The notes beneath the pieces were generated by a model that had not been told where the DNA came from, searched no databases, and saw only the letters and a program-made list of their open reading frames with translations. A stretch of DNA of 51,400 nucleotides. Origin: Leucoraja ocellata. Taxonomy: Eukaryota. Location of the stretch: the NCBI GenBank assembly GCA_036785375.1, contig JAWMAR010004410.1:1-51400 (forward strand). The letters run 5' to 3'. The first letter of the stretch is position 1; each line of letters starts with the position of its first letter. Of the stretch, positions 10,767 to 51,024 are shown one piece after another. A program made the translations under genes and the position numbers.

Positions 10767-10815
10767 ATGCAACTCCTCCTGAAGCTGCTTTTCCTCCTGC
10801 ATGCAGGAACACAAG
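10767..10815 (+). CDS. IgSF receptor copy A, exon 1: signal peptide MQLLLKLLFLLHAGTQ(G)
   Basis: ATG in AAGATG context, hydrophobic leader, phase-1 donor AAG|GCAAGT (GC-AG type). Joins the V exon in frame. Confidence 0.75.
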
Positions 10816-11522
10816 GCAAGTTATGTTGATCGGACAATCTGTGGGCCAAGGAGCCGTGATGAGGATCTTCATTATGTGGCATATTGCATCGATAGGTAGT
10901 TCAGGAGCTAGTCTGTTATTAAAACAGCAAGTCGATTAATATCTCTGCTCAAAGGCCGAGAAACCCTTCACAATATTTAGTCTCCATTTAATCAGTATCT
11001 TTAATGTTGGAATAAAAGTTTTGCATCTTCATTGACTGCGATTGCCTGCAAAGATTCAAATAGTTAAAACATTTGAGATATAATTCGGTCACTGCAACTC
11101 CATCAGAGAGCACAAAGCAAGAAACTTACGAAGGTGTAGAAACGAAGAACAGCAGATTCTGGTTTGCAAGTGAAGACACAGAGTGCTGGAGCAACTCAGC
11201 GGGTCAGGCAGGCAGCATCCCTGGAGAACATGGATAGGAGGCGTTTCGGGTCGGGACCCTTTTCCAAACTTTGAAAAATCATCTCATCCATGTGCTCCTG
11301 AGATGTTTCCTGACCCGCCGAGTTACTCCAGCCACTTGTGTCTTTTCTAGCGTCCAAATATCACGGTGCCACCTGCCACCGAATCTGCTGAGAGAAGGCA
11401 TTTGCAACCATCATGGAAGCGAGAATCGTTGTTTGAAAACGTCAGATTTGAATGCGTTTCTTTTAAGTATTGTTTCCGTTAGAAAACCAATCCCTCGTTC
11501 AGTGTGTAAAGTGGATGTTTAT

Positions 11523-12258
11523 AGGGTGATTTCACCAAAGGTCAAATGAGCGTAGACCCCCCATCACGTGACCGAAAATTTTAACTGGAGGACATCTCTC
11601 AGTTCGGTACATGTAAGTGAATGGGGAAACAGCACTTTCCCACCCGTTAAAAACATGGAAAACGGCCGATTTTTGAGCTGAAATTTTCTGTGCTAGTCGG
11701 GGTGACCGTGAAGCACAGCGACCTAAAATTTCAGGCAAAATAAAAGATAGAAAGTAAGGTAAATACAAGAGGGAACTGAAGGTGGAACACAGCGGAAGTG
11801 AACAGCCGACATTTGCCGTGGAGATTTTAAGATCCAAAATATCGGGAATTATCGCGTTTGCTCGCTAAATTTCATCAAAAGTAAGTTAATAATGCCTTCC
11901 TTTTGATGAAATTCAGCGAGCAAACGCGATAATTCCCGATATTTTGGATCTTAAAATCACCACGGCAAATGTCAGCTGTTCACTTCCACTGCTTTCTACC
12001 TTCAGTTCCCTCTTGTAATTACCTTACTTTCTATCTTTTTTTTGCCTGAAATTTTAGGTCGCTGTGCTTTACGGTCACCCCGACTAGCACAGAAAATTTC
12101 AGCTCAAAAATCGGCCGTTTTCCATGTTTTTAACGGGTGGGAAAGTGCGTGTTTCCCCATTCACTTACATGTACCAAACTGAGAGATGTCCTCCAGTAAA
12201 AAATTTCGGTCACGTGAGGGGGGATCTACGCTCATTTGACCTTAGGTGAAATCACCCT
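11523..12258. mobile_element. Fold-back (palindromic) non-autonomous DNA transposon, copy A only
   Basis: Arms of about 360 bp are near-perfect reverse complements around a ~20-nt spacer (about 11881-11900). Ends are AGGGTGATTTCACC...GGTGAAATCACCCT, flanked by AT/AT. The paralogous empty site is GTTT-AT-TGAACT at about 29557-29568. Confidence 0.9.
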
Positions 12259-12309
12259 ATTGAACTACTAACGGGAGTATCATTGACAAATGTATTTATT
12301 TTCCACCAG

Positions 12310-12657
12310 GAGTTCCGCTAATCACAAATTTGATCCAGCCACGTCTGGTCAAAGTGTGCAGAGGCGAGTCCGTCACGTTAAACTGTACGTTTAGTTATAA
12401 TGGAAGTGTGAATGCCTGGCTCCGCGTTTCATGGTATCGGAAATCGCCTGGAGGGGCTGATATTACTTACAACACGAACAACTCGCTCTGCATTCCTCAC
12501 CCCCTCTGGGGTGGTTTCAACAACTGTACAGTATCACTGATGATTGAAAATGTATCGTTTGGTCACTCTGTTTACGACTACATCTGTGCGGTGAAGGTAC
12601 CAAATGTCTTCCCTCCAATTTATGAAACGGGCCAAGGAACACGAATACAGGTTTATG
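12310..12657 (+). CDS. IgSF receptor copy A, exon 2: VJ-type V-set Ig domain
   Basis: Acceptor TTTTCCACCAG| and donor ATG|GTAAAG; 348 nt, phase 1-1. V-set motifs GESVTLNC, WYR, SLxIxNV, YxC and a J-like GQGTRIQV. Confidence 0.92.
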
Positions 12658-13316
12658 GTAAAGTATTTGTAATACCATGATGATCTCCAGTCTCGCCACT
12701 TTATGTTTATGAAATCAATAATATTATTGACCCAATTAATTTTTAAACTTCTAACAAAGTAGAGGCAGTGGTAGATCTTTTTCATGATTACAGCTATGTG
12801 CTCTGCTTAAGCGAGGTCATCTGAGATGTTATCATCCAGGAATTTGAAGTTGCTAACTCATTCCACCATTGACCCAATCTTAAAAACTGCATGTTGTCGC
12901 CCGACTTCACCATTCCAAAGTTAATGATTTGCTACTTTGTTTTGTTGACCTTGAGTGAGAGTTTGTTGTTGCAGCACCAATCAACCAGTTGTTCCATCTC
13001 TCTCTTGCGGACTGACTGATCACCACCCCTAATTCAGCTAACCACTATGGTGTCATTGTTGAGTTGATAGATGGCGTTGGAGCTATGCTTAGCCACATAG
13101 CTATGGGTGAGAAAAGAGCAGAGCAGGGTTGGTCTCCTTTGTTTGCAACAATTAAGTCTGAGGAGCAATTAAATTGCAGTGCATTAAATTATGTGAGGTC
13201 TCAACAAACAAACCAGAAAGGACTTGGATCTCGTTGCCCGGAGTAACTTAGAAGCATAGATGTAATTTAGCTGGTAGACAAAATTGGGTTGATGTTGTGA
13301 ACAAATAAATTCACTT

Positions 13317-13462
13317 GGACGTACACAAAAATGCTGGAGAAACTCAGCGGGTGCAGCAGCATCTATGAAGCTTCCTTCGCTCCATAGATGCTGCTGCACC
13401 CGCTGAGTTTCTCCAGCATTTTTGTGTACCTTCGATTTTCCAGCATCTGCAATTCCTTATTA
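13317..13462. mobile_element. Short Penelope-associated hairpin insertion with 17-bp TSD (paralog about 31887-32030)
   Basis: Flanked by AACAAATAAATTCACTT (13300-13316 and 13463-13479). Contains a perfect 47-bp inverted repeat (13321-13367 / 13383-13429). Confidence 0.75.
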
Positions 13463-13651
13463 AACAAATAAATTCACTTAATCAGTGGCAGTGACTGGAA
13501 TTCATCACCAGAATGGGTAAAAGAAGTAGAAATCTTCACCAAATTTCATGTACCTGAATAAGCACTTGAAGTGCATCACTTACAGGGCTTTGAACTTGAG
13601 AAGTGAGAGTCAATTTAACGTATGTTTTAGAGCAGCATGTATCTCCTACAC

Positions 13652-13884
13652 CAGGGGTTCTCAACCTTTTTCATCCCGATTACCACTGGCAACTTTAATA
13701 GCACATAACAATGTTATTTCACATATATGAACAACTAATGATGAACAGATACCGGTATGCCAGAACCAAACACAGTCAGTCAATGAGAAAAAATATGTAC
13801 AAAATCCAGACTCAACAAATTTACCCCCTAGGTAGGCGAAATTTACCCTCTGGGGGTAAATTTATCCCAGGTTGGGATCTCTTG
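13652..13884. mobile_element. hAT (Charlie-like) MITE (paralog 32230-32464)
   Basis: Imperfect TIRs CAGGGGTTCTCAACCT / AGGTTGGGATCTCTTG. 8-bp flanks are TCCTACAC / TTCTATAC (TTCTACAC in copy B), consistent with a hAT 8-bp TSD. Confidence 0.75.
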
Positions 13885-14261
13885 TTCTATACCATAAATT
13901 TCTACAGTGATTATTATTAACTCAAGTTACCACTATTCTCTCACTGAAATGTTTTACTGTGCATTACTGTGCATTACAAGTATCGCCAATACTAACCAAA
14001 AGACTGTGAGTCTGTTGGATATACATGATCTCATTTTGCCAGGACCATGGAGTAATATTATAATGGTCCAGCATATATTTGATCCTTGATGCGTCTCAGC
14101 TAAAGAAGGGCTATATTTTTTTTATAATTCTACATCATTAATTTAACATATTCTCTATGAAAATAGAGCAGAATTTTGGACAACTTACTCTGTCAGTAAG
14201 TTTCACTAACATTGAAATGTGTGATATATAGTTTAATACTTTATGCTTTATCTTCTCTCAG

Positions 14262-14552
14262 ATCTTCCAGAAATGTATATACGGAGTGATACTTTGGTTG
14301 CTGGTCATGAATCCACTCTAACCTGCACTGGCAAGGGATTGTACGACAAGGATGTCTCCTTTACATGGACATGCACTTCTACAAATATCACTGCACCAAC
14401 TTTTGAAACAGACAGGAATGGCACACTAGTTGCCACCAGTCATTACAAGATTGTCCCAAGAGTGGAAGACAATGGAACTGTTTGCAGTTGTCAGATTAAT
14501 CATTCCGTTTTTAGACGGCCAGCTGTAAATACGATCAAACTAAATATTATGT
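14262..14552 (+). CDS. IgSF receptor copy A, exon 3: C1-like (or nectin/CD80-type C2) Ig domain
   Basis: Acceptor CTCTCAG| and donor T|GTAAGT; 291 nt, phase 1-1. Motifs LTCTGKGLYDKDVSFTW, DRNGTLVATS and CQINHS. Confidence 0.92.
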
Positions 14553-16438
14553 GTAAGTATCATCTATAACTTTTGAAGTGGTATTCAATGGTTGCTAATT
14601 TTTGAATTCTTATTGTATGCACATTGTTGTGTTATAACTGATATGCACTGTACATCACCATCTATACCAGTCTAACTGAATGTCTTCTGCATCTACTTTA
14701 CCTGTTCATTGACCCAGTTCCATTAGTTTTATCACTTACATTTTCTCTCATTTATATTGTTCTTGGTTTCTTCTATTTTGCCTTCCTCTCTTGTCCTGTT
14801 ACTCAGACCCAAAGTTTCAATTCACCTTTCTCAATTGCTTTTAATTAATCTGCCCCTAATTGTCTTCTAACTATGATGATTATTTCCCAGATTTGAATCA
14901 TTCTCAGTTCAGTTTGAAGCTTATTTATAGATATCTCTTGGTAATCCTATGTGTGTGTCTCCCCACCTCCACTGAGGCAATCTTAAAAGCTAATCCAGCT
15001 AACCTTCCTTCGCAATCAGAGTTTATGACACTTACAGGGTGGATCATTATTCATCATCCCTCTCCCTTCCATATTCATGTTCTATCCTATTTATTTTAGA
15101 ATTGGACTTTTGCCATCTAAGTCCTCATTGTGCGTGTGTGCATTGATAAAAGTATTTCAAATATAACTAATTGCTCCTTCTCCAAACTTCTTGGCTACGG
15201 CCTCACAGAGGTTCTATGTTCCCTTTCACCAAAACTCACTTTCTTCTGTCCTTATCCATCTCCTGCAACACTTCACCCTTTGGTTGGTGGCGCGACTCAC
15301 CCGTTGCAGCGCCCCCTACAGCCTTTCTGTCTTTTTTTTATTTTTTGTCTAGTTAAATGTAGTGTTGGTGTTTTTTTTAATACTAGTTTTAAATGTGGTA
15401 TATGTGGGGAGCAGGGGGGGGGGGGGGGGGGACTTGTTTGTGTGAATTAAATTGTGTGTATGTCTGTAGGAAATTGTCTTTGTTTGTATGGCTGTGGAAA
15501 CAGAATTTCGTTGACAATAAATTGTATTGTTTTGTATAGTATTGTATTGTATTTTGCATCTCTGCTTGTTTTGTACTTCATTGCAATGAGTGGTATCTTC
15601 TTCTCGCTATTTTCAATGCCCGTCTTATGTACTTGTCTTAACCTTAGGTCTTTGAGTTCATAGCCCTCTGTCCTGCAATAACTTTGTTTTCAATATCAAT
15701 TCCTCTATTCATGGCCACACCAACAATATTCCCTTATCATGTGTAGGAAGAAACTGCAGATGCTGGTTTAAAAAGAAGATAGTTGGAGTAACTCAGCGGG
15801 AGTAGGGTCTCGACCCAAAGCGTCACCCATTCCCTCTTCAGAGATGCTGCCTGGCCCGCTGAGTTACTCTAGCATTCCCTTCACAGGTGGCCCTAGTACT
15901 CTCACCATATGCAGGGGTATCTGTGATCATTTGTGGTAGCCGTATAAATCACTTACAACCCCACACCCACCTGTGTTCCGACAGGTGAAGGAAATCACCT
16001 AAGAATTATATTACTGGGTTGACTCTTCAAACGGTTAGGCATTTGGACCTCCATTTGCTACGTTTACCAAACACTTCATCTCGTTACTACCAGCTGTATA
16101 ACCATCGAACAATTCTACATTTCTCCAGTCGTAATGTCGAAGATTCTCAACTTTCATCGTGCAAATGGTTCATTAAGCTCTAGCATTCACTCCCCTTTCC
16201 TCTCCGCATCAATCCCTCACTCTCCATAGACAAGAACAAGCTTAGCTTTTTGTTACGTATTCGATTCTTTCCAACTTGGCTTCAGTGGCAGTCCGTGTTG
16301 TACTGAGGCCCCTTGAGAATGATTAGCTTTCAGAAGTGCAAAATTTGATTGTAAATAGCTGTTCTGTGTCTACTTGCATGTTAATTCTTTTCACATTGCT
16401 TTAATCTACAATAAAGTGTACATTATCTTTACCGTTAG

Positions 16439-16756
16439 ATGGACCACAAGATCTATTAATAACATACAGGTTGAAAGCAGTGGATACTTTTCGACTGATC
16501 AATGATAGCATCATCTTTGTTGCTGCTGATTCATTCCTGGAACTGAATTGTCGCGTAGATAGTAATCCGGTGCCCACTGTTTTCTGGACAAATGCTACGG
16601 AGAATCATAATGTAACGTTGCAAACTGGAGTCGGGTTCAAAAGTTCAAAAGAATGGATACGTTTCCAGCGTAAAGATGAAGGAATGTATTGGTGCATGGC
16701 AAAAAACGACTACGGCTGGAGAAACAGAAGTATCTCGATAAACACAAAACGGAAAG
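16439..16756 (+). CDS. IgSF receptor copy A, exon 4: C2/I-set Ig domain
   Basis: Acceptor CCGTTAG| and donor AAG|GTAAAT; 318 nt, phase 1-1. Reads (Y)GPQ...LELNCRVDSNPVPTVFW...DEGMYWCMAKNDYG. Confidence 0.92.
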
Positions 16757-17155
16757 GTAAATAGAAATGTAATTATACATGTGCCTAGGTAATTGAGGTG
16801 GAATCATTCTTAGCAAATAACACCTCAGCTTAATTAGTTCAATGTCTTTTTTATTGATCTTAGTGATTGATCAATTGTAATATTTTATTTATTTTACAAA
16901 TCATATGTAGTAAAGACGATTTACTGCTGTCATCTTCAAATGCTTTGATTTTATAGTGTTTCCATTGAAGAATTGGAACATTTAAACATTAGAGTGCTGT
17001 AGTTTTGTTTATAAATGGCAGTGTGTCTCTTTGAAAGAAATATGTACCCTGCTGTCAAATATAGTAAAACGATTGCAGTGTATTTTTTTATACTTTTTAT
17101 GTTTCTCAGAGCTGAAACATTACATTTAGTTGACACCTTGAATTTTCTTTCACAG

Positions 17156-17247
17156 ATTATCCTTGGCTTTATGCCCTGGTCCTGGTCCCCCTAACTACTG
17201 CCATCATTTTGGCAATAATATATTTTTGCCTGTTCCGAAATAGGTAA
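17156..17247 (+). CDS. IgSF receptor copy A, exon 5: transmembrane segment ending in TAA (DYPWLYALVLVPLTTAIILAIIYFCLFRNR*)
   Basis: Acceptor TTTCTTTCACAG|, hydrophobic stretch, and TAA at 17245-17247 where copy B has CAA. The ancestral donor AAG|GTAAAA remains at 17254/17255. Confidence 0.85.
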
Positions 17248-17260
17248 CAAAAAGGTAAAA

Positions 17261-18622
17261 GAGGGTGTTCGGTGGGGGGATTGTGGAGGGGGGGGGGGGT
17301 TGGTAAGGGGTGGTGTGAGTTGGGGTGGTTGTGCGGGGAGGGGGCTGTTGGCGAGGTTTGTGGGTAGGCGGCGGGGCTTGTGAAGGTGGGGGGGTAGTGT
17401 GGGCTGGGGAGGTGGGGGAGGGAGGTGCGGACGAACTGGGGTTGTGGGGGGGTGTTTGGGCGGGAGGGGTTGTGGGGGGAGAGAGCTCAGAGAAAAGAGG
17501 GAAGAGCCATGGTGAAGAGGGGGTATCACGGGTGAGGGGGACAGGAGCCAGCAAGGGAGCTGGCGGTGCGATGGGGATTCACAGCGGGTGCTAGTTGATG
17601 GTTGTTCTCCTCCGCCAGGATCAGAGTCCCTGCTCTCCATTTGGCGACATCTCCGACTCCGCGCCAGGCTGGGGTGGGCCGGTCCGCTTCCGGGCCGTCC
17701 GAAAATTGTCCGTTTGGAGACCTCCGATGGCCATCCTCAGCTCCAGTAAAGACGTGATGGCGCAGGAAGTGGCGGACCATCCCGGAGAGTGACAGGAGAA
17801 AAGACCAATCCATGGGGGGGAGGGGGGGAGAGAGGGAGAGAGGGAGAGAGGGGGAGAGAGAGAGAGAATATCTCGGCTGGTGACTCGGCTATTAGGGGCC
17901 TTGTGGACTGAAATTAGTGGTTTCAAGCAGGCCAAACAACTCATTTCATTTTATTTCCATTTCAAGAACAGAGCAGGGCAAACAGCTCATTGTATTTTCA
18001 TTTCATTTCCATTTCAGTTTCAAGCACAGGGCAGGCCAAACAGCTCATTGCATTTTCATTTCATTTCCATTTCCATTGCAGGTTTAAGCACAGGGCAGGC
18101 CAAACAACTCATTGCATTTTCATTTCACTTCCATTGCCATTGCAGTTTCAAGCACAAGGCAGGCCAAACAACTCATTTTATTTTCATTAAGGGCTAACAA
18201 ATCATTTATTGCAAGTACAATGCAGACTCACAGTTCAGTTGGCAATGGCAATAGAAATGCCGACTCACAGCTTAGAATGAGAGTCATGCTCTCTCCCTCA
18301 CGATCTTGCAGAGTGACTGAGTCACGTCCAGGCATCCGGGGTTTTATAGTCCTGCCCCCCCACCCCCAGAAAGGGCATTACCTTCATCGCGGTGATTGAA
18401 AGGCGAGAGTATCTCATGGTTTTTTAAACACTCATAACTTTTTCATTTTTCATTGATGGGAAAAATCCTCAGGACCTGCTCAGCAGAGGAGGACTGTGAG
18501 TAAGATGGCCAAAAATCATAGCGATATATGACAGCGTTTTTTTCTAAAATCAATATACAGCACAGACAGGCAGTGGTCAAGATGACACTTTTAATTATAT
18601 AGATGATATATAGATGATAGAT
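17261..18622 (+). mobile_element. GC-rich interspersed element, possibly a 5'-truncated non-autonomous Helitron/Helentron-like element; copy A only
   Basis: Absent from copy B. Has G-rich low-complexity tracts, an internal tandem array and a 3' end TTTTAATTATATAGAT(GATA)n. Family assignment is by resemblance only. Confidence 0.5.
17915..18190. repeat. Tandem array of about 5 units of 55-60 bp (TTTCAAGCACAGGGCAGGCCAAACAACTCATTGCATTTTCATTTCATTTCCAT...)
   Basis: Repeated units are directly visible. Confidence 0.85.
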
Positions 18623-20457
18623 AGACCTACTGAAGTTAGGGAGGAAGTTTGGAGAGGAAATTCATTTCTGGAAAAAGTGCAGCATCAACTCTCCACAAAG
18701 CCACCAAGACGTGGAATTATTCATGAAGAGACTTGAAAGGAAAAGCCCTTTTATTTAGTCAACTTTGCAAAGGTTAAAAGGATGAAAGGGAAAGTTGAAT
18801 AATGAGAGAGTGACATAACATTTCACAAGGGGAGCAGCAAGAAAGTTTTGAAATGAAACTCACTGAGAGTAAATTTTGAAAAAAAAATCTAATTCCCTGT
18901 TTGCTGTTAACAGTTTATGGTGGCTTTGAAAAAGAAGAGACAGCAGAGTGAGACTGGATAATATGGAGTCAATTTGATTTAATTGGATTGATTGGATTTG
19001 ATTGGACTTTTTCATGTTGTATATGATTCTCACTATTAGGCTGCGTGACAGCTTAATAAACCAATATGTAAAATTGAAGCTTGAATGCCATCAATGCCAT
19101 TGGAATATTTTTCCTGCTGTGAATCTTATCACTGGCATTTCTTTATTGTCAATGCTTTGCTATTTCTTTTCACTTGCTTCACTTAAGGCTAAAGTACACC
19201 ATCCCCCATGCATTTCCTGTTCAAGAGTGCATTGGAATCACCCAAAAAACCCTCAAGACTGCGGAACGCATTTCTAGTGCAATGTACAGGCCTTTGTTAA
19301 CCAAAGCGTGATGTGTTCTGACCACTACATCTCCATATTTCTCATCACCCAGACCTTTTCAACATGAATGTATAGTATTATTTCACCACAACTATGGAGC
19401 TATATCAACACCTGAAAAATTATACATGCAGATTTCAGAAAAAATTACATGCTGCTTTACAAAACCAGGCCAAGATTCGAGGAAATTGGGTCTGAAATAC
19501 ATCCTCCTTGATGTAGGAAGGAATCTATCGATGCTAATCCATTCTTAGCTCTGTGCAAGAGAGAATATTTAGCATATGTATTTTGGGAATTTTGTTCATA
19601 GCAAGTTTAACGAGCCTGGATAGAGTGGATGTGGAGATGATGTTTCCACTAGTGGGAGAGTCTAGGCCCAGAGGTTATAGCCTCAGAATTAAAGGATGTT
19701 CCTTTAGGAAGGTGATGAGGAGGAATTTCATTTGTAAGGACATGATGAATTTGTCGAATTTATTCTCACAGAGGGCTATGGAGGCCTGGTCCGTGGATAT
19801 ATTTAAGGCAGAAATAAATATATTCCTGATTAGTAAGGGTGTCAGGAATTATTGGAAGAAGGCAGGAGAATGGGGTTAGGAAGGAGAGATGGATCGAACC
19901 ATCGGCAGCGGCGACTATGGAGGGTCAAGGCCCCATACACAGATGAACAAAAGGAGGAAGACTGACTGAACTCTATTGCCTTCCATCACAGTGATCACTG
20001 TGGTGGATGTTTATGTTAAGTTTTATCGTTCTTTTAATTGTGTTGTGTTCTTTTAATTGTATAGCTGCATGGCAACTCAAATATCACTGTACCTTAATTG
20101 GTGCATGTGACAATAAATGTGAATTTGATTTGCTTTGATTTGACTTGATCTTTCTGCTCAGCATTCCTCATGGATGAGTTTCCTAACTCCACACTAAGAT
20201 TTAGTAAAAACATTCATTCATATGGCAATTGCCTTTTCTGTTCCACATTTATGGCTTGTTTTATGCTTATAGGGCAGATTGACTAACAGCTAGTGAATGG
20301 CCACAACAGGTTTTAAATCAGCAATTCAGACACTATTTAAATGCAAAAATAGACAATTGCAGTGAAGTGGCAAAAAAAATGGGAGCTAATGTATCAGCTA
20401 CACATATACTAAATATTGGCCAGAATTATCTTGGTTGGTTTGGGGAAGATCTCATGC

Positions 20458-21018
20458 ATCAGTTGTATAGGGCTCTGGTGAGACCACATCTGGAGTATTG
20501 TGTACAGTTTTGGTCTCCTAATTTGAGGAAGGACATCCTTGTGATTGAGGCAGTGCAGAGTAGGTTCACGGGATTGATCCCTGGGATGGCGGGACTGTCA
20601 TATGAGGACAGATTGAAAAGACTAGGCTTGTATTCACTGGAGATTAGAAGGATGAAGGGGTTCTTATAGAAACATATAAAATTATAAAAGGACTGGACAA
20701 GCTAGATGCAGGAAAAAAGTTCCCAATGTTGGGCGAGTCCAGAACCAGGGGCCACAGTCTTAGAATAAAGGGGAGGTCATTTAAGACTGAGGTGAGAAAA
20801 AAATTTTCACCCAGAGAGTTGTGAATTTATGGAATTCCCTGCCACAGGATGGATTTAAGAGAGAGTTAGATGGAGCTCTAGGGGCTAGTGGAGTCAAGGG
20901 CTTATGGGTTGAAGGCAGGCACGGGTTATTGATAGGGGACGATCAGCCATGATCACAATGAATGGCGGTGCTGGCTCGAAGGGCCGAATGGCCTCCTCCT
21001 GCACCTATTTTCTATGTT
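20458..21018 (+). mobile_element. 5'-truncated CR1 LINE (RT C-terminal region), copy A-specific insertion
   Basis: Encodes LYRALVRPHLEYCVQFWSP. The paralogous site at about 38847 (CTCATGC-TATACTACCC) is empty. Confidence 0.88.
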
Positions 21019-41411: not shown

Positions 41412-41624
41412 TTGGTCTACCCATTCCACAAGCTCCCATTGGTCTGCCCATTCCACAAGCTCCCATTGGTCTGCCCATTCCACAAGCTCCCATTGGTCTG
41501 CCCATTCCACAAGCTCCCATTTGCCTGCCCATTCCACAAGATCCCATTGGCCTGCCCATTCCACAAGCTCCCATTGGCCTGCCCATTCCACAAGCTCCCA
41601 TTGGCCTGCCCATTCCACAAGCTC
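41412..41624. repeat. 27-bp minisatellite, about 8 copies (TTGGYCTGCCCATTCCACAAGCTCCCA)
   Basis: Head-to-tail units are directly visible, with no spacers. Confidence 0.95.
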
Positions 41625-44236
41625 AGACAGCATTAAAAATTTGGTAATCCTATTTTAAAGTGTTAAAGAGTCATGTAGCATGGAAACAGACCCATCGGCC
41701 TAACTTGCCCATGCTAACCAAGATGCTCCATCTTCACAAGTCCCACCTGCCCATGTTTGGCTCTCTAAACCTTTCCTATCCATGTACATATTTGCTGTGT
41801 GTTCTGTGTGTTCACTATCATTGACACCATAAGTGTTATTGGATGAGTGTCTTGGTTTGTCTTAAGCATTCCTGTGAGTTACTCCAGCACTTTGTGTCCT
41901 TTTGTGTAAACCAACATCTGCAATCCCTTGTTTTTACACTGAGAATTCTGCTGGACTGGACTTGGAAGGACCCAAGATACAGTAGAAAGGCTGATGTGGG
42001 AAGCAGAGGGCAGCTGAGTGACTGTCAATACAAACAGATACTGTAGTTAACAAAGTTGCTTGAGTGGAATACTTGTTCTAGTTTGCGTTAGGTTCTGAAG
42101 ATGGTAGAAACATTACTCACTCTCTGAGCAATCACCTCTGCTTGTTGGGCTAATTGCTTACAGATATTGTGAAGTGCCTTTCAACATTTTGTACTACAAT
42201 GAATAATCGTACCATTTCCTGGCAGTGCATCGAAATAATAATAACTTGTCAAACAGCCTTCTGGTGGACTAAAGAACATATAATCATGCATTATCTTGTT
42301 CTGTGTGAAATTATACTTACTTTACTTAATCTCTTTAAATTAAGAACATTAAATCATTGTAGCTGTTTGCTGCATAATCTATACAACATGTTTATGACAC
42401 TCCCAAGTTTGGGTGCAATAGGTTTGTCAGAGAATTGGCCACAGTATTATGGTTCTTAACATGTTCATTAAATGAAAACTCCTGAATTCTCCGAGTATAT
42501 TAGTCTAGTTACAACCAAAGCATGAAAGACGGCCGGATAAGTCTCTAGGGAAAAGTACTTTCAAATTAATTCATTTTTGATTACATCTTATCTATTGTCT
42601 TCATAATTTTATATTACCTTCATGGGCGTAGTCGACCATCATATCCTGGTTTCACTTCCCTCTTAAACCAGCGAAGACTCAGCTACAAGGAGTTGTAGGA
42701 GTCGTTTTGTGACAATTCAACTGTGCAAGTGTTTCTCCGTGTTTGCTGAACCCATATGATGCTCCACATCTACATATTCAGTCAAACATAGAGGATGCAT
42801 GGATTTGAGTCAGTTAAGACAGTGACCCCAGCAATGAGTCAAGAGACCCGGGCTTCATGAACAGATACTTTATGATACACGAAAGCTATTATCAAGCACA
42901 ATCGTCTAGCAGGATAGCAGTGAAGACTATTTTTAGAAGCATGGTTATATTATTGTGGTCTAAAGCAGCCTTTAGTAGGAATTGTAACAAATTGATACTC
43001 TATTGACAAAATGCATTCTGGTAATAAATAGAACTTTAAAAAAAAAAGCGATGGAAAAGATGGACTGTAAAGCTAAAATATGATTACTATGGTAATTAAA
43101 GTACATTTGAACCTAATATTTTAATAATTTAAAATATAGGTCTGGTTGAATATTGTTTTCAGTTTGTTGGCTTCATTTTTGTTTTAGTGATTGTTCCCAA
43201 TATTCAGCCTAGCTGCATGAGCACCTGTGTTGGAGATTATTATACCTTGAAACTGGCAAATGGCTTTCGATGCATACTACGATAAAGCCTTTGTTTTCGA
43301 TCTGAATAACCTAGAACAGAGAACTTTCTTCAGTGAAAAGCTCCAAGAAAGTTGGGATTACGTATTCATTCTATTGTTTCAATCATGTTATAGGAGTAAT
43401 CCAAAAAGTTATTGGATACGGATTTTTAGATCTAGAAGTCATTGAGGTAGCAGCTTAGTTTATTGTTTATTATCATGTGTACCGAGGTACAGTGAAAAGC
43501 TCATGTTGCCTGCTAACCAGTCAGCGGAAAGACAATACGTGATTACAATTGAACCATCCACAGTCTTATCCAAAAGTTATACCTCAGTTATATACTTGCA
43601 TTGATGACTGATCTGCAGAAGTACAATGGGCAGTTTTGCGGAACACTCCTAAATTGCCCTCTGCGACGTACAAGATCGTTATTGATTCTTTATGCCCAAC
43701 AAAGTCAATTTGCAGAATATATGGACAAATACTCTTGGTGCACAAGAAGACCAAGGTGCAAACTTTTGATTCAAGGGTTTCTCAAGGAATTCCTCTTTGG
43801 AATTCACTCTGGATATCATGACAGCCCAGAGAGCAGTTAATCACATGGCACAACGTTGGTAGTCTAAAGTAACAAATATTGTTCATCGTCAATAATATAC
43901 ACACTTCATACTGAGATGTGAATCTGTGTAACTTTATCGGAATGGAATCTGGATTTCCCAATTTTAACGAGAAGCGAGTGAGCAAACTAGTACTGAATTA
44001 ATTAAAACTGTGGAAGATGCAGGTTGACATTGCCCTTCGTGTTGAACGTCTCCAGAGTAGGATGCAAGCCCACAGCCTTCTGACAAAGTGTTACCAAAGT
44101 GATGCTTTCTACTGAGGGAGCAAAAAGCCAATGCTAATGATACCTCAGGAGTGACTGATCTAATAATCACAACTGACAAGCTGTGTTGAAATTAGCATTC
44201 GATTGTCAAATACATGTTTTCTTTCCCTTTCCCCAG

Positions 44237-44264
44237 ATCCAGTCAATGTAACCATTGAGCTGAG
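44237..44264 (+). CDS. Candidate cytoplasmic micro-exon of copy B (DPVNVTIEL[R/S])
   Basis: Strong acceptor TTTTCTTTCCCTTTCCCCAG| and donor GAG|GTAAGA. Only the phase-1 frame, which matches the TM exon, is open. Confidence 0.55.
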
Positions 44265-47254
44265 GTAAGAACTTTGATTTAATTTTAACATTATGTGAAA
44301 ACATTTGATTAATATATTTATAATATTGTACAGTTTGTTTAATTATTTCACATTCCACCAGATCACTCAAGTACTAATTTATATCATTCCCAGAACCCCA
44401 AATTCTACTGAAATGCAGTAAATGAGAAGTTGATGCTAACAGTGTCAGAAAATTACTGCAAACCTTCATGATTTAACATATCTCAGAAGTAAAAGTTGAT
44501 GTGTAACAACATAAATCAGTGTAGGGGTCTATGAAAAGCTTCATTTGTCCATGTTTATTCTACACGCCCAATTCTTATGTTTGTTATCCACAGAAAATAT
44601 AAGAAAATGTAATTGAAAACCTCCAAAGGGAACAACGCCTAACCAAAATGCGTGACAATGAGATGGGTGTTTCCCAGTGGGTGATAGAATTAATGTTTTC
44701 AATTGGAATTAGAGGAAGAACTAAAGACAATGTAAAGGCATTAATTGCACTGACAAAACACTGGTAGTTCAGAATATTTCACTTTCACTATCACCAGTCT
44801 CCAGATGCAACTCTGTATGCATTGCTGAGGTGTCCAACAGTTGTCTTCCAAACATCTTACTACACTTTAATCCCTGAGAATATTTCCCATCTGAGAGTCC
44901 AAGCATTAGGTGTCTTTCAGGCTTAGTGTATTTTTTCAATCTCTCAACCCCTGTTGCACCAGAGCCCAAAATACCTAAGATGAACAATGATTAGAAATGT
45001 CACAACTGCTATCACTGTTAGCTGCACTACCCGATGATGACTCTAAACTGTGCCTGGTCAAGTTTTTTGTTGGACGATCAGTAATACCGCTCGAACATTC
45101 AGTCAGCTCATCAGCAACTTGGAGTTTTTTTATTCGTTGCTAATTTTAACAACACTAATTTGGTCAAATGATGGGATTTAATACTTTCAAGAGAGGAAAA
45201 TCCTTATGTCCCATTCCCATTAATAAATGTTATTCTTCAATGGCTTTACATTAAACACCATTTACTCATTTCAAATGGGTGACATAACCATGGTAAGTGC
45301 TCTGGATGTAATTGAATACATAGTAAAAAGATGATGAATTACTCTGTATGGAAAGGAAGTCTGGACAAAGGTGACAGACTGTGCAGTATGACATTGGCTG
45401 GTAACATTGTTCAAGCCATAAAGCACAACATGGTTGTGGGAATTGTGCAAGTTATTAAAATGCATAAGACTGTTACTTTTCTACCACGTATACAATGTCA
45501 TTAGACAATAGAAGAATGAAATAAGGCTAATAGTATTCTCTTTTAAAATTATTTCTATCTTGTATTGATTTTGTCTTTTTTTATTTCTATCTGTTCAAGT
45601 CCTGAAAACATGCACAGGGATGAAAACTGCAACAAGGAGTTAGGTATGTATATTATATGCAACTGTGTTTAGTTTAGTTTAGAGATACAGCATGGAAGCA
45701 GGCCCTTAGGCCCACTGAGCCTGCACAGACCAACAAACACCTGTACACAAGTTCTACCCTACACATGAAGGACAATTTACAGAAGCCAATTAACCTACAA
45801 ACCTGCACGTCTTTGGAATGTGTGAGGAAACCGGAGCAACTGGACGTAACCAAAGTGGTCACAGGGTGAATGTCCAAACTCCATACAGACAGCACCCGTG
45901 GTCAGGATCGAACCAGTGTGTCTGGTGTTGTATCAGACAGAGTACACTAACTATTCAATGTCAATTGTGAAAAGTTCAACTGTACATGTGAGACCAAAAG
46001 AGCATTGAACTAAAATGTAATCAGCGGGTTAACGCTTCTTCAGCAGTTCTAAAGGATACAACTTTATTTGGACCAGTATCTGAGAGTCCAAGCATTAGTC
46101 ATTGTCCATTATCTCAACCCCCATGCCCAGCTTTCCTCAAAACCATCCCACCTCAATCCTGATCATCAGCCCAGAGCCTCGACTCCTACCCCGTCCTAGC
46201 ACCACCACCCATCTAAAACAACAGCCTGGCAGATAATATGAAACAGGACATAAATTACAGCAAAACGTGACATTGGTAGATAACATAATACAAGCATTAA
46301 ACTGATGGAAGATTGTGGTTATTATGCAAGTTACTAGGCAAAACAGTAGGGAATGGAGAGATATGGATTACATGGAGGTAGAGAAGAGATGGTCTGCCAT
46401 CATGTCGGCACAGACATCATGGGCCACAAGGCCTGTTCTTGTGCTGTCCTGTGTTCTATGTGGTAAGTGTAGCATGCTTCAGACAATGTGGGTGACTCTT
46501 GACATTTGGCTCTCCTACATTTCAATAATTTTCCTCAAAACATTTCTTGACTTGTAATTGGAATTTATTTCTCTGATCAGTCAACAGCATTGTATGAGGC
46601 AGTTTACAGATTGGTAAAAGGCTAATAAGGTGGGCCTTGGTCTTATACCTCCTGGCAATGCTTATCTTCCTGAGAAGCTGGTGTATAACAGCTAGTAAGG
46701 GCTAACCCTGAGGGTCCTTCAGGAAAATGGGATTCTCTTCAATTGGAAGCATGTAGGTTTCCTCCCACATCCCAGAGACGTGCAGGTTTGTAGGCTAGGT
46801 GACTTCTGTAAATTGCCCCAAATGTTTAAAGAGCGAGGAAGAGAGTGGGATAACCTAGAACTAGTGGGAATGGGAGAGCAATAATCAGCCTGGCCTCGAT
46901 GGGCCAAAGGGCCTGTTTGCATGCTGCATCCCGAAAACTAAAACTAAATTAAAAACCATCACACTGTGGACACTGGGGAGAACTCCAGAGGAGTACTTGA
47001 ACACGTATGGGGAAGATAGGTATTAAGCAGATGCACGTTCATTGATTTTGGGGTTTTTTCGCAGTAGGTGGATGCATAAATGTGATCTACTATGTGGTCT
47101 GAAATATAGTCACAGTGACATATAGCATGGTAACTACCCTTTGACCCTACTTGCCCATGACAACTGAAGTGCCCCAGCTACACTAGTCCCACCCGCCGGC
47201 ATTTGCCCCATATACCTCTACCTTCCCTGTCCATGTACAAGTTCAAATACCTAT

Positions 47255-48197
47255 TCATGATTTAGATGAAGGAATTAAAAGTAGCATTAGCAAATTTGCA
47301 GATGACACAAAGCTGGGTGGCAGTGTGACTGTGAAGAGGATGCTATGAGGATGCAGGATGACTTGGATAGGTTGGGTGAGTGGGCAGATGCAGTATAATG
47401 TGGATACATGTGAGGATATCCACTTTGGTGGCAAGAACAAGAAGGCAGATCATTATCTGAATGGTGTCAGATTAGGTAAAGGGGAAGTGCAATGAGACCT
47501 GGGTGTCCTTGTTCATCAGTCAATGAAAGTAAGCATTCAGTTGCAGCAGGCAGTGAAGAATGTGAATGGCATGTTGGCCTTCATAATGAGAGGATTTGAG
47601 TATATGAGCAAAGAGGTACTTCTGCAGTTGTATAGGGCCCTGGTGAGACCACACCTGAAGTATTGCGTGCAGTTTTGGTCTACAATTTTGAGGAAGGACA
47701 TTCTTGCTATTGAGGAAGTGCAGCATAAATTCACACGGATGGCAGGACTGTCATATGATGAAAGAATGGAACGACTGGGCTTGTATTCACTGGAATTTAG
47801 GATGAGAGGTGATCTTATAGAAACATATAAAATTATTAAGGGATTGGGCACGCTAGATGTAGGCAACATGGTCCCGATGTTGGGGGAGTCCAGAACCAGG
47901 GGCTACAGTTTAAGAAGGGGTGGGCCATTTAGAACTGAGATGAGGAAACACATTTTCAACCAGAGAGTTGTGAATTTGTGGAATTCTCTGCCTCAGAAGG
48001 CAGTGGAAGCCGACTCACTGGATGCATTCAAAAGAGAGTTAGATAGAACTCTTAGGGCTAGCGGAATCAAGGGATATGGGGAGAAGGCAGGAATGGGGCA
48101 CTGAATGTGGATGATCAGCCGCGATCACATTGAATGGCGGTGCTGGCTCGAAGGGCCAAATGGCCTACTCCTGCACCTATTTTCTATGTAACTATGT
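47255..48197 (+). mobile_element. CR1 LINE 3' portion (RT with FADD motif), disrupted
   Basis: ISKFADDTKLGG, LYRALVRPHL and the conserved 3' UTR with CTATGT tail. Confidence 0.9.
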
Positions 48198-50788
48198 ATG
48201 TCTCTTAAATGGTGTTGTATCTGCCTCAACTATCTTCTCTGGGAGCTTGTTCCATTTACTCACCAGCCTCTGTGTGAAAACATTGCCCCTCAGATTCCTA
48301 TTAAATCTTTACCTCTCGCCTTAAATCTATGTCCTCTGGTTCTTGATTCCCCTACTTCTTGGGTAAAAAGAAATTCTGTGCATCTACCCTGTCTATTCCA
48401 TCTTGATTTATCTTGAATTTGCATCTCTGAGCAAAGTGAGTGCAGTGAAAGTCCTCTCTGGGAAGCTCAAATAATCACAAGGATAAAAGCTGCTGCAGCT
48501 CTGTGCTTCCTGCAAAGGCAGAGTGGGATGAATGACATGGTGAAGCCTGCGACCAGATTAAAATCATTAAAATCCCCCCAAAAGTTTCCTCATCCCTTCT
48601 TTGCAACATATTTTCAAGAGGGTTCCTATTTGCACATTCAGCATCATCAGCAATAGAATATTCACATCTGCAACACGTGTACAAGTCTATCTTGCACGTG
48701 TTGAGGCTACAAAGCCGCTCGGCCTTGTATTTTTCACAGAACAGTTTATTAAATTAGTTGCCAGAATCTCTTTACTGAGAACACTACAGCATGCTTTATA
48801 GTGAAGTAGTTACTTACATTTCTAAGTATGCATTACAAGGCACCACATATGCAACCACCTGCTTTTTTCCAATGCCAGCCATAAACCAATGTAAACAGCA
48901 CCGTTGAGACTTTATTCAGAGAATCAGTAAGATAAGCCTTGAGGCACGCTAACAAACGTTAAGGCACAACGGTTATTACTACATCCCAGTAGTGGTGTCA
49001 GAGCTACATTCAATTCTGTATATCATTTGTGGTTAAAAAAGCATGTGATGCTGCAATTTTAGGTCAAGGGGAGGATATGACAATGAAGCTCTGTGCTTGA
49101 TGCTGATAGTTCTTACGGTCTGAATGCAGGTAGATGGGACTAGGTGAGAGTAAGTGTTTGGCATGGACTAGAAGGGCCGAGATGGCCTGTTTCCGTGCTG
49201 TAATTGTTATATGGTTATAGGGGCTGGCAGAGTGTGGATCAACTTACTACAGCTATGGTCAAGAGGGAAAAAATGAAATACTCAGTACTTATGATCCTAA
49301 CTACTAATTATTTATAGAATTATATAGCGCAGAAACAGGCCTTTTGCCTGCACAGGCCATTCAGACCATTCAGACCATTGTACTTGTCTATACTTAGCCC
49401 CATTTGCTCGCATTCAATCCGTATTTTTATTCGGAATAAAAACAAAAGATGTTAACGAAAGTAAGGTGGAATCAGGAACAAAGACACAAAACATGTCAAC
49501 ATTGTACATATGAAAGTATTACCACGACAAAACTTTGAGCCAAACCACGCTCTGCTTTTTTTTGTAGTTTGGTAGAAAACTTCCAAAGACAACCTCCTTA
49601 TAGTTCAGCTGATCTCAGAAGCAAATCAGAGGTCAGATACCAAAACATTTAAACCTCCTTTCCACAATGGACTAATCAACTGGTGGTGAAATGCTTGACT
49701 GTTGTTACTAAAGCATCCACATTCATATTAATGAGGTCACCGCCACTGAATATAAATGAAATTGCTAGTATGTGGTTCACTTATTTTTCTTTAGTTACCA
49801 TGTCTAAAACATCAAGGAGCTTTTAATTAATTTTATCTACTTTAAATAATTGTTATATTTTAAAAAATGTTTGAAACCTTTTCAAACTGCTTTTCGTGTT
49901 CTCAGGGGCATTGAGAATCAGCTTGAAATGTCCTCTAACATGCATCTAGAGGTGAGAACCATTGGCAGTAAGTTCAGGTACTGGGTCAAAACTAGAAGAG
50001 CATCGGCCAATATCCAAGCATGGCTGAGACTGATCAACTTGTACTGTGTGAACTTGTGCCAGGGAATATTAATGGTAGTCATATTGTTTCAGTTGGTAGC
50101 AATCAAAATAGATTATAGAAGTACAGGCACCACACGCGGGCCGGCGGCTGCGTGTGCTGGACTGGAGGTGCGGCGGCTTCGACCGCCCCGGGCCGCAGTG
50201 TTTGAACCGGCCCGTTCGCGGGGTTCGGTGAGCTGAGGGACTGTTTGTACCATCGCCCGGTGGGGAATTGCCTCAGCGCAGAGGGAGAAGAGGGAAGAGA
50301 CTGCAGCCCTAAGATTTTTGCCTCCACCACAGTGAGGAGGTGTTTGGAGGACTCACTGTGGTGGATGTTAATTTGTGTTTATTGGTGTTTATTATTGTAT
50401 CATTGTATGTATGACTGCAGGCACGAAATTTCGTTCAGACCGTAAGGTCTGAATGACAATAAAGGAAATTCAATTTATGCATGTTTGGAAATAAGGCACG
50501 TGTTTAATTAATTACCAAATATCAAATTTATGCGCTGTATTTTTGAAATATTGCGCTCAAAGTTACACATGTATAAATGTATTTATTTAATTTATGTATC
50601 TTTGAATGACATGCTCCATTTCAGGAGTGTAACCCCTGCGTAAAGTTTAAAGCACTGAAAGAGCCTTACCGATCTTTGCTAGTATTTATCCCTCATACTT
50701 AGCTCCTCCCATCCTTAACTAAACTATCCAGATGTTAGATGAATTTATTACTGCTTCTGATATTCATGCATTCTGATTTATTTGGCAG

Positions 50789-50848
50789 ATACAATATATG
50801 CAGTGGTCAGGAAGAATGGCCCACCAATCAGCAGACCGTATTCAACCG
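50789..50848 (+). CDS. Cytoplasmic exon with ITSM (DTIYAVVRKNGPPISRPYST)
   Basis: Acceptor TTTATTTGGCAG| and donor CCG|GTAAGA; 60 nt. In phase 1 it encodes TIYAVV (TxYxxV) at 50791-50808 and is frame-compatible with the copy B TM exon. Confidence 0.7.
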
Positions 50849-50926
50849 GTAAGATAAAATTCAGGGACTTAAGTTTCTTCCATATATTACAATAAATGCT
50901 TCACATGTTTGTTCTTTTCCCCACAG

Positions 50927-51024
50927 AGGTTGCCTTTGTTAATGAAGGGAACAGTGAAGAAGAAGTCTCCTATGCGGACATTGTTATCCACAGTCCAAAA
51001 CAACGCTACAACCAAAAAGCCAAG
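50927..51024 (+). CDS. Cytoplasmic exon with ITIM (EVAFVNEGNSEEEVSYADIVIHSPKQRYNQKAK)
   Basis: Strong acceptor GTTCTTTTCCCCACAG| after a 78-nt intron, and donor AAG|GTATTG. VSYADI (50965-50982) is preceded by an acidic EEE. The gene may continue past the window. Confidence 0.75.

Follow-up and report, generated by a model that had tools for sequence, protein, structure and literature searches.

A tandem gene pair of the immunoglobulin superfamily in the skate Leucoraja ocellata, encoding a predicted inhibitory-type receptor and a tail-less twin

Introduction

In the SIRP family, SIRP-alpha is inhibitory and SIRP-beta activating, while SIRP-gamma, with a short tail and no charged residue in its transmembrane (TM) segment, is the tail-less member. 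Among the CD33-related Siglecs, gene conversion keeps the ectodomains of the pairs Siglec-5/14 and Siglec-11/16 alike, while TM segment and tail differ; the V-set domain of a Siglec carries a sialic-acid-binding Arg on strand F and has no canonical B-F disulfide. PRARP, found outside mammals, is reportedly a transmembrane protein in which a non-rearranging VJ domain is joined to C1 and the tail is of inhibitory type; it is said to have two Ig domains, with its different chains encoded by a pair of linked genes. In elasmobranchs, UrIg and UrIg2 are presented in PMC12227049 as non-rearranging shark VJ-C1 genes, in which C1-type domains follow VJ in a chain.

Here we analysed a window of 51,400 nucleotides from the skate L. 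ocellata (assembly GCA_036785375.1, contig JAWMAR010004410.1, forward strand), in which an original prediction had placed a candidate paired immune-receptor system. We compare its two genes, copy A and copy B, with each other, with their relatives in other fishes and with the systems above.

Results

Two tandem genes share one exon layout

We established by self-blastn that the window contains a tandem duplication, with copies about 18 kb apart (Table 1). Copies A and B have a common layout of leader, VJ-type V, C1-set, I-set and TM exons, so that self-blastn, Pfam and the exon bounds confirm the two tandem genes of the original prediction. The splice sites, which had been called intact, are kept with open frames, including all five exons of copy A, but the donor of the leader intron in both copies is GC (GCAAGT), not GT. 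The predicted I-set exon is present, with its start corrected to 16439 in copy A and 34479 in copy B; an RNA joint from 14552 to 16439, with GT..AG ends, spans the preceding intron in copy A.

Table 1. Positions of the exons and duplicated segments of copies A and B in the window
Feature	Start	End	Strand	Evidence
Duplicated segment, copy A	6844	20457	+	self-blastn; collinear with 24848-38847
Copy A leader exon (MQLLLKLLFLLHAGTQ, phase 1, GC donor)	10767	10815	+	N-terminus of P0032 matches
Copy A V exon, germline-joined VJ type, end GQGTRIQVY	12310	12657	+	Pfam V-set 1.1e-9
Copy A C1-set exon	14262	14552	+	Pfam C1-set 6.5e-7; donor 14552 backed by RNA joint
Copy A I-set / Ig_3 exon	16439	16756	+	Pfam Ig_3 2e-9, I-set 6e-7; acceptor 16439 backed by RNA joint
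Copy A TM exon, premature TAA 17245-17247 (…LYALVLVPLTTAIILAIIYFCLFRNR, then stop)	17156	17254	+	no charged residue in helix
Duplicated segment, copy B	24848	38847	+	self-blastn
Copy B leader exon (GC donor)	28807	28855	+	exon bounds fixed
Copy B V exon	29612	29959	+	Pfam; exon bounds fixed
Copy B C1-set exon	32840	33130	+	Pfam; exon bounds fixed
Copy B I-set exon	34479	34796	+	Pfam; A-B comparison
Copy B TM exon, open (…IIYVCLNCKRQRK, phase 1 donor)	35790	35891	+	0/32 residues differ from Amblyraja long form P0044
Copy B cytoplasmic exon 1 (DPVNVTIEL, phase 1 to 2)	44237	44264	+	same residues identical in P0032 and P0044
Copy B cytoplasmic exon 2 (SPENMHRDENCNKEL, phase 2 to 1)	45600	45643	+	tblastn with relatives; splice sites
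Copy B cytoplasmic exon 3, ITSM TIYAVV from 50791	50789	50848	+	AG/GT sites, fitting phase
Copy B cytoplasmic exon 4, ITIM VSYADI from 50965	50927	51024	+	AG/GT sites; ends phase 0 at GT donor

The identity between the two copies is uneven. By self-blastn it reaches 97-98% from 8.3 to 15.3 kb versus 86-89% in both flanks; along the profile, the core stands at 0.968-0.988 (8300-11299) and 0.976-0.982 (13300-15299), and the 3' side drops to 0.87 (16800-17299) and 0.859-0.893 (18800-20299). Across 3.4 kb of promoter and 5'UTR the identity is 97.7% (self-blastn), the C1 exons differ at 2 of 292 bases and the TM exons at 16 of 102. At the protein level, 14 of 115 residues differ in V, 1 of 96 in C1 and 4 of 105 in the I domain. 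The V exon has accumulated 14 non-synonymous and 4 synonymous changes, and this dN/dS of about 1 fits relaxed constraint and diversifying selection equally.

High core identity is also what an assembly error would leave, had the second copy arisen from a haplotype placed in tandem or from a repeat that was collapsed or expanded. The L. erinacea model P0032, which is copy A-like at its 5' end (none of the 115 V-exon residues differs) and copy B-like at its 3' end, adds to this, as it could mean that the L. erinacea assembly holds a single gene. We nevertheless find an artefact hardly credible: the flanks differ by 11-14%, there are copy-specific insertions (among others 30028-31289 and 34956-35533 in B and 17260-18624 in A), the A-type TM sequence is found independently in Amblyraja radiata, and DNA-type runs from another study, one of which may be the source sample, contain 0.47-0.71 of the copy A words.

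Copy B carries a four-exon tail with conserved tyrosine motifs

Copy B is intact and runs beyond the end of the window. Its open TM exon and the downstream TIYAVV and VSYADI exons, all part of the original prediction, are present with AG/GT sites and in matching phase; the tail itself, however, comprises four exons, those at 44237-44264 and 45600-45643 having been missed, and it extends past 51024. We showed that the exons at 50.8-51.0 kb belong to the same transcript, since RefSeq models and the spliced long-form Logan contigs P0046 and P0047 join them to V-C1-I-TM. In P0032, P0044, P0029, P0046 and P0047, V-C1-I-TM is followed by the four tail exons of the window in genomic order.

The motifs of this tail are strongly conserved. 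Among 16 long-tailed sequences, the first reads TxYxx[VI] in 14 and IIYAxV in the other two, while V[SP]YADI and S[EV]YS[VA][VI] are found in 16/16. The third motif, SEYSVV in orthologues, would by orthology be encoded past 51024 in copy B. The tail thus shows the Siglec combination of an ITIM and a membrane-distal ITIM-like motif, of which only VSYADI lies inside the window.

Copy A stops just past the membrane

The original prediction also held that copy A is truncated just past the TM segment and has no tail exons before copy B, and both points stand. The TAA lies four codons past the TM helix and gives a product ending in CLFRNR; the base that makes the stop is T at 17245 in copy A and C in copy B. 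Between 17250 and 24800, a search for the DPVNVTIEL-type motif, and tblastn with full-length relatives for other tail exons, returned no tail-like exon. The TM segment, LYALVLVPLTTAIILAIIYFCLF, is devoid of K, R, D and E. Copy A is therefore not a classical activating partner and would not be one of DAP12 type, and no beta-type partner with a TM Lys was found in the window.

An unstudied family of jawed fishes

The original prediction could match the domain combination to no named family. This combination is present in gene models of 18 elasmobranch species, whose names are automatic ("Siglec-12/13/14", "MAG-like", SIRPa-like, "uncharacterized"), and copy B looks 1:1 with the elasmobranch models. 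Among ray-finned fishes, the family has relatives in paddlefish, sturgeon, bowfin, gar, bonefish and arowana, those of paddlefish and sturgeon being auto-named SIRP-alpha-like. The V exon retrieved six full-length relatives from 1.84 billion representatives (E 5.5e-48 to 1.1e-22), and P0029 retrieved 15 proteins at E<=1e-10. Our literature search found no paper on this old and unstudied family. Pairs of a short and a long form are also present in Rhinoraja (P0001/P0029) and in the sawshark Pristiophorus (P0042/P0059), and sawshark P0042 has an Arg inside its TM segment. The window sequence closest to the end of the Rhinoraja short form falls in repeat-like DNA.

We compared the family with the systems that its automatic names evoke. 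Its non-rearranging V domain, with a J-like motif placed directly on a C1-set domain, recalls SIRP: positions 23-221 of the family profile align with residues 5-205 of SIRP-alpha (2wng) at E 6.7e-20, SIRP-gamma is aligned as well, and Pfam agrees on V followed by C1-set. The likeness extends to several tail tyrosine motifs in the xxYADx / SEYSxV style, to paired members with similar ectodomains and, for copy A, to the short tail and uncharged TM segment of SIRP-gamma. In contrast to SIRP, whose third domain is C1-set, the third skate exon is I-set / Ig_3 (Table 1) with no C1-set match in Pfam, which speaks against SIRP membership; in the PDB this exon is closest to neurofascin, contactin, Robo and MAG. 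The skate V-C1 moreover matches IgA, light chains and UrIg2 at least as well as SIRP. With UrIg2 (9dmx) the family profile again reaches E 6.7e-20 over V-C1, although the single-exon match is weak (E 2e-4). Both have a one-exon VJ followed by a C1-type domain in elasmobranchs, but the skate family has one C1-set exon, then one I-set exon and an ITSM/ITIM tail, and UrIg / UrIg2 membership was rejected. PRARP, as reported, shares VJ, C1 and an inhibitory-type tail, and differs in its two Ig domains and different chains.

That these genes are true, sialic-acid-binding Siglecs, the skate counterpart of Siglec-5/14-type pairs, would agree with the automatic RefSeq names and with the ITIM plus ITIM-like motifs of the tail. 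It would also agree with domains 2-3 and their linker L.V.Y.PQ, which resemble MAG and Siglec-8: the family profile aligns MAG domains 2-3 (39.5 bits, i-E 2e-9) and Siglec-8 residues 160-332, and domain 3, of Ig_3 / I-set type, matches MAG domains 3-4. The V domain makes this reading highly improbable, and Siglec membership was rejected on it. MAG V scores 5.2 bits against the family profile (i-E 49), each of the 60 top-ranked PDB matches of the V exon is a V domain from an antibody or nanobody, and the family keeps both cysteines of the canonical B-F pair (C109 without exception, C42 nearly so) as well as the GxGT J motif. Domain 2 scores as C1-set (Pfam 6.5e-7 versus 0.003 for C2-set_2), although in P0042 C2-set_2 is the better match (3.8e-8 versus 2.3e-6), and it carries GLYDKDISFTW and CQINH, which we take to be C1-set hallmarks. 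Nectin, PVR, CADM, CD96 and CRTAM chains are all missing from the 60 top-ranked PDB matches of each exon and of the family profile.

The age of the pair and the state of copy A

We assessed the history of the pair with a quartet of the two window copies and the short and long forms of A. radiata, in which sites were grouped by species or by type. In the ectodomain, 7 sites group by species and 0 by type; the TM segment shows the opposite split, with 4 sites by type and 0 by species (Fisher p=0.003). On these alignments the pair is older than the split from A. radiata, because the TM exons group by type across both skates. Within this skate, the contrast between core and flank identity points to gene conversion, which would keep the stretch from promoter to I-set alike within a species while the TM and 3' parts diverged.

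Expression was followed in four runs. The copy A TM exon had zero read depth in all four, and the exons shared with copy B reached only about 0.4 to 2 fold; reads on these shared exons are mosaics of A and B letters.

Zero depth on the A-type TM exon would be expected if copy A were a dying partial duplicate, born without tail exons, later hit by a nonsense change, converted in its 5' part by copy B and without function of its own. The duplication indeed ends (20457 / 38847) before the first of the four tail exons is reached, dN/dS in V is about 1, and no L. erinacea short-form model was found in the clusters examined. The stop also lies elsewhere in the two skates: short forms end in FRNR here, in ...CLF in Amblyraja and differently again in Rhinoraja. 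The Amblyraja short model P0043 begins partway through V and lacks a signal peptide, a missing N-terminus that may reflect decay in that species. Against this, the short type was already there before the Amblyraja split and has been kept, with 1 of 26 TM residues changed between copy A and P0043 and a derived Phe shared by the two, and partners that are short or lack a tail turn up again in Rhinoraja and Pristiophorus. The residues left before the stop, RNR, make a proper basic end for stop-transfer, and the five exons remain open with splice sites kept, although gene conversion by itself could hold the ectodomain exons of a dead copy open. We regard decay of copy A as a serious possibility, though as the less likely reading.

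Discussion

We lean, with modest confidence, towards two tandem paralogues of an old IgSF family, copy B being a full-length inhibitory-type receptor and copy A a tail-less twin kept alike by conversion. Copy B is predicted to be an inhibitory receptor whose tail combines the ITSM TIYAVV with the ITIM VSYADI and, judging from its orthologues, a further ITIM, SEYSVV. Ligand binding at its V domain would lead to phosphorylation of the tail tyrosines, and the phosphorylated tail would then dock SH2 phosphatases of the SHP-1/2 type or SAP-type adaptors. Copy A, if made, would be a membrane-anchored, non-signalling decoy or competitor, a design like that of SIRP-gamma.

The locus resembles the CD33-related Siglec pairs in that conversion appears to keep the ectodomains alike while TM and tail are unlike. 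It differs from them in its antigen-receptor-like VJ domain and a domain 2 that scores as C1-set, and in a tail-less, uncharged partner that does not look DAP12-coupled. Of the general features of paired receptors, linked near-identical ectodomains and an ITIM-type partner are present, and a partner with a charged TM is not. The idea of paired receptors in a cartilaginous fish gains from near-identical ectodomains with unlike signalling ends, and from the same two types in Amblyraja, but copy A is not of the activating type.

More speculatively, and with considerable doubt, the family could be a jawed-vertebrate lineage of great age, made up of non-rearranging VJ-C1 receptors and distinct from SIRP, UrIg and Siglecs, which databases mislabel and which cartilaginous and early-branching ray-finned fishes have kept. 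In skates it would form a true paired system, in which an inhibitory gene and a tail-less decoy exchange the ligand-binding ectodomain in both directions, and in which the V domain varies strongly among individuals and copies, as would follow from pathogens exploiting the inhibitory receptor; the sawshark would have evolved an activating partner with an Arg in its TM independently.

One-exon VJ-C1 genes are sought, as PMC12227049 puts it, as kin of the ancestor gene of antibodies and T-cell receptors. The skate family is another VJ-C1 gene, found from sharks to early-branching ray-finned fishes, with a strongly conserved inhibitory-type tail. The RefSeq names "Siglec-12/13/14" are probably wrong for these genes, and could mislead studies of Siglec evolution. 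If the proposed pairing is true, the paired-receptor pattern, in which conversion keeps ectodomains alike while signalling ends are unlike, would date back to cartilaginous fishes and be found in a family distinct from KIR, LILR, Siglec and SIRP.

Two tandem genes with one exon set

Self-comparison of the window, which is free of N runs, revealed a tandem duplication with a period of ~18 kb (~6844-20457 against 24848-38847). The two receptor genes that it carries, copy A and copy B, display the same set of exons on the plus strand, and all Ig and TM exons of both copies are phase 1-1, with an AG acceptor and a GT donor. The leader intron opens at a GC donor in both copies and seems to be used as a GC-AG intron, since the orthologue proteins and the cDNA-derived P0046 (a protein from a spliced Logan contig) read straight across the junction. 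An ORF near 19.0 / 37.4 kb was rejected as the TM exon, the true one reading at 17156 / 35790, and an apparent mismatch of frame from the C1 exon to the I-set exon (ORF start 16471) was ruled out by the real acceptor at 16439.

Exons, copy A-copy B identity segments and repeats in the window
Feature	Position	Strand	Details
Leader exon, 49 bases	ATG at 10767 (A) / 28807 (B)	+	MQLLLKLLF(L/I)LHAGTQ; phase 1 end; GC donor GCAAGT at 10816-10821 (A) / 28856-28861 (B)
V exon	12310-12657 (A) / 29612-29959 (B)	+	Pfam V-set 1.1e-9 / 5.4e-9; J-like end GQGTRIQVY
C1-set exon	14262-14552 (A) / 32840-33130 (B)	+	Pfam C1-set 6.5e-7 / 5e-7
Ig_3 / I-set exon	16439-16756 (A) / 34479-34796 (B)	+	Ig_3 2e-9 / 4.8e-10
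TM exon	17156-17254 (A) / 35790-35891 (B)	+	
Copy B tail exon 1	44237-44264	+	DPVNVTIEL
Copy B tail exon 2	45600-45643	+	SPENMHRDENCNKEL
Copy B tail exon 3	50789-50848	+	DTIYAVVRKNGPPISRPYST
Copy B tail exon 4	50927-51024	+	EVAFVNEGNSEEEVSYADIVIHSPKQRYNQKAK
A-B identity 0.877	6800-7299		5' flank
A-B identity 0.968-0.988	8300-11299		promoter, leader exon, first-intron start
A-B identity 0.94-0.957	around V exon		
A-B identity 0.976-0.982	13300-15299		
A-B identity 0.87	16800-17299		contains TM exon
A-B identity 0.859-0.893	18800-20299		
Repeated element, LYSLEFRR type	1080-1320, 3980-4220, 7974-8270, 20460-21017, 25716-25925, 34955-35541, 47523-48204	both	34955-35541 is a copy B-specific insertion between I-set and TM exons
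G-rich tract	17260-17640		directly after copy A TM exon
64-base repeat, 3.7 copies	17960-18188		in copy A-specific stretch after TM exon
27-base minisatellite, 7.9 copies, 96% matches	41412-41624		in copy B TM-to-tail intron

A repeat whose ORF is of the type …YRALVRPHLEYCVQFWSP…LYSLEFRR… also occurs at least seven times in the window.

The two copies differ in their signalling ends

The TM exon of copy B is open (…IIYVCLNCKRQRK) and ends at a phase 1 donor. In copy A, the TM end …IIYFCLFRNR is followed by a TAA stop at 17245-17247, the T at 17245 being a C in copy B, and the TM helix contains no charged residue. Searching the window with full-length relatives (tblastn) and for motifs placed four tail exons of copy B inside the window, with phases that chain correctly (1 -> 2 -> 1 -> 1 -> 0), and detected no tail-like exon between the copy A TM exon and copy B. 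The duplication ends (20457 / 38847) upstream of every tail exon. An apparent frameshift in the 45.6 kb exon was ruled out by the 28-base exon at 44237.

To the extent that orthology and cDNA can tell, these tail exons are part of copy B. Firstly, three RefSeq models, P0032 (Leucoraja erinacea), P0044 (the long, tyrosine-tailed form of Amblyraja radiata) and P0029 (the long form of Rhinoraja), join V, C1, I, TM and the four tail exons of the window in genomic order. Secondly, the same spliced product is encoded by two Logan contigs (P0046 and P0047; 2326 and 1866 bases), which are so short that they could not hold the whole reading frame unless they were cDNA. Thirdly, the tail exons of the window encode the same residues as P0032 over DTIYAVV…QKAK. 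The last of them closes at a GT donor, hence the gene extends beyond the window; in orthologues, ~50 further residues, including SEYSVV, follow this point. The anatomy put forward in the original prediction was thus right and is extended here: the exons it described stand, but it had missed two tail exons and the leader GC donors, and had overlooked that the tail runs on past the end of the window.

Positions 41941-41982 code for ENSAGLDLEGPKIQ and a stop, with 79% identity to the last 14 residues of the short Rhinoraja form P0001, whose C-terminal end ENSVGVELEGPKIQ matches this stretch at E 1.3e-4. As an exon of copy B the stretch was rejected, having no AG acceptor and lying in repeat-like DNA.

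A family spread across elasmobranchs and ray-finned fishes

All searches with window sequence were run exon by exon, full-length comparisons being made through database proteins. Searching 1.84 billion representative proteins with the V exon of copy B gave 28 matches at E<=0.001, six of which are full-length relatives (E 5.5e-48 to 1.1e-22), and with P0029 as query 15 of 2950 candidate proteins reached E<=1e-10. Cluster look-ups and the P0029 search together yielded gene models, ~490 residues long, from 18 species of elasmobranch: Leucoraja erinacea, Amblyraja radiata, Rhinoraja longicauda, two Mobula, Narcine, Cetorhinus, Carcharodon, Rhincodon, Stegostoma, Heptranchias, two Scyliorhinus, Heterodontus, Pristiophorus, Hemiscyllium and two Chiloscyllium. 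The names assigned to them automatically conflict (sialic acid-binding Ig-like lectin 8/12/13/14, myelin-associated glycoprotein-like, sialoadhesin-like, uncharacterized). The same V-C1-I-TM build is found in several ray-finned fishes. Relatives in paddlefish and sturgeon (both auto-named SIRP-alpha-like), bowfin and gar have short tails without tyrosine motifs; those of bonefish and arowana have tyrosine-rich tails, with canonical ITIMs in the arowana protein only.

Within the family, conservation is higher in the tail than in the V domain. In a set of 16 elasmobranch sequences with long tails, the first tail motif reads TxYxx[VI] in 14 cases and IIYAxV in two, and both V[SP]YADI and S[EV]YS[VA][VI] are present in every one. 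Copy B encodes a membrane protein of type I, whose ectodomain is VJ-C1-I and whose ITSM and ITIM tail motifs are conserved across elasmobranchs.

Against solved structures, the best 60 matches listed for the V exon are all antibody or nanobody V domains, the top two being light chains (~1e-4). For the C1 exon the matches are constant domains of IgA and IgG, SIRP-gamma (2e-4) and UrIg2 (2e-4), and for the third Ig exon they are neurofascin, contactin, Robo and MAG. A profile built from 17 members of the family aligns over V-C1 with IgA1, UrIg2, SIRP-alpha (E 6.7e-20, profile positions 23-221) and light chains, and also with domains 2-3 of MAG and Siglec-8. In the family V domain, both the canonical cysteine pair and the GxGT motif are retained, domain 2 carries GLYDKDISFTW and CQINH, which we take to be the usual C1-set marks, and in the alignment with MAG the V domain scores 5.2 bits (i-E 49) against 39.5 bits for domains 2-3. 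The Siglec name therefore draws its support from domain 3 and the tail rather than from a lectin V-set. By its third domain, of I-set type, the family is not a SIRP; nor is it UrIg, which is a chain of C1 domains with no ITIM (PMC12227049), unlike the VJ-C1-I build and ITSM/ITIM tail seen here. These comparisons covered the described families other than PRARP (Fu et al. 2019).

An old pair with probable ectodomain homogenisation

The identity of the two copies is a mosaic along the duplication. By exon, they differ at 1/49 bases in the leader, 18/349 in V, 2/292 in C1, 7/318 in I and 16/102 in TM, where a 3-base gap also separates them. Amblyraja radiata has both types, the long P0044 and the short P0043, which ends …LVLVPLTTAIILAIIYFCLF, so that a quartet could be formed from these and the two window copies. 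In the ectodomain, seven sites group the sequences by species, none by type and one in the cross pattern, whereas in the TM four sites group them by type and none by species (Fisher p 0.003; 0.008 with C1 and I alone). Judged against outgroups, the derived TM states I, M, V and N are common to the long forms, and a Phe after CL to the short ones. On the simplest reading, the duplication would have preceded the divergence of the two skates, with the ectodomain part homogenised within each species thereafter. Siglec-5/14-type pairs show the same pattern of within-species ectodomain homogenisation.

Gene models point to pairs elsewhere. In Rhinoraja, the short gene P0001 (380 residues, tyrosine-free tail) and the long P0029 are 96% alike. 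In Pristiophorus, the ectodomains of the long P0059 and its partner P0042 are almost identical, and the TM of P0042 contains an Arg, as is typical of adaptor-coupled activating receptors. The TM end of P0042 (Pristiophorus japonicus) reads …IWSFIIRSIAVAAYILILITLNCLV; its N-terminus resembles a poor gene model, and the Arg-bearing TM end as query matched P0042 alone.

Some sequences mix the two types. P0032 has the V of copy A (0/115 differences) and a nearly identical I-set exon, with a TM and tail of B type, and P0046 joins an A-type 5'UTR to a B-type 3' part. These mixtures could be chimeric gene models, products of exchange between copies, or a single gene fused by unequal crossing-over on some haplotypes.

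Variation concentrates in the V domain

Between copies A and B, 14/115 residues differ in V, 1/96 in C1 and 4/105 in the I-set exon. In the V exon dN is 0.055 and dS 0.051, with counts too small to separate diversifying selection from relaxed constraint; the values are 0.0045 and 0.015 in the C1 exon and 0.016 and 0.047 in the I-set exon. Nine of the 14 V changes lie either in the stretch that follows WYR or in the loop that precedes GQGT, which by analogy with antibody V domains would correspond to the C'-C'' and F-G loops. Five distinct V sequences were distinguished: window A (= P0032), window B, P0046, P0047 and P0044. An A-to-G change at 29771, relative to 12469, turns a Tyr into an extra V-domain Cys in copy B (…DVTCNTNN…). 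The Cys of VKVCRGES is present in both copies, most relatives having Trp, Arg, Leu or Gly at this place.

RNA evidence

We compared 5971 bases of copy A (12280-18250) with one contig set and three raw RNA runs bearing the same species label, covering 5 to 25% of each raw run, with tissues unstated. The C1-to-I splice (14552 -> 16439, GT..AG) is present in one contig and in one read of each of two runs. Reads over C1 and I mix A-type, B-type and other letters and hence cannot be attributed to either copy. At an exon depth of ~0.4 to 2, the depth on the copy A TM exon is zero in all four of the runs. The promoter and 5'UTR of copy A are 97.7% identical to those of copy B over 3.4 kb.

At 13280-13479 and 15680-15879 the RNA depth is hundreds-fold in all runs, with strand-switching joints, and thousands of loose read ends begin at 13372; these bins are taken for intronic interspersed repeats, outside the transcript of the gene.

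Discussion

The feature is real and well-formed. No paper describing the family was found in the literature searched; the supplementary gene lists or figures of PMC10751288 and PMC12227049 may name the locus. The original prediction could match the domain combination to no named family, but gene models of the family were already in databases, misleadingly named. In kind, the feature varies the known paired-receptor theme. As for the pair itself, an inhibitory end and a tailless end are borne out. The twin is not of the activating kind: with no charged residue in its TM, copy A cannot be placed among DAP12-coupled activating partners. The main rival to a functional copy A is that it is a relic that looks whole only through conversion, a reading that we hold possible though less likely than not.

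As judged from sequence, the pair appears old and to evolve in concert. ITIM/ITSM receptors generally signal via SHP-1/2-type phosphatases or SAP-type adaptors. In copy B, phosphorylation of the tail tyrosines would recruit such phosphatases or adaptors, and activation would be damped. If copy A is made, it would offer a binding face equal to that of copy B or slightly altered, but no signalling, and may act as a decoy or competitor of the SIRP-gamma kind.
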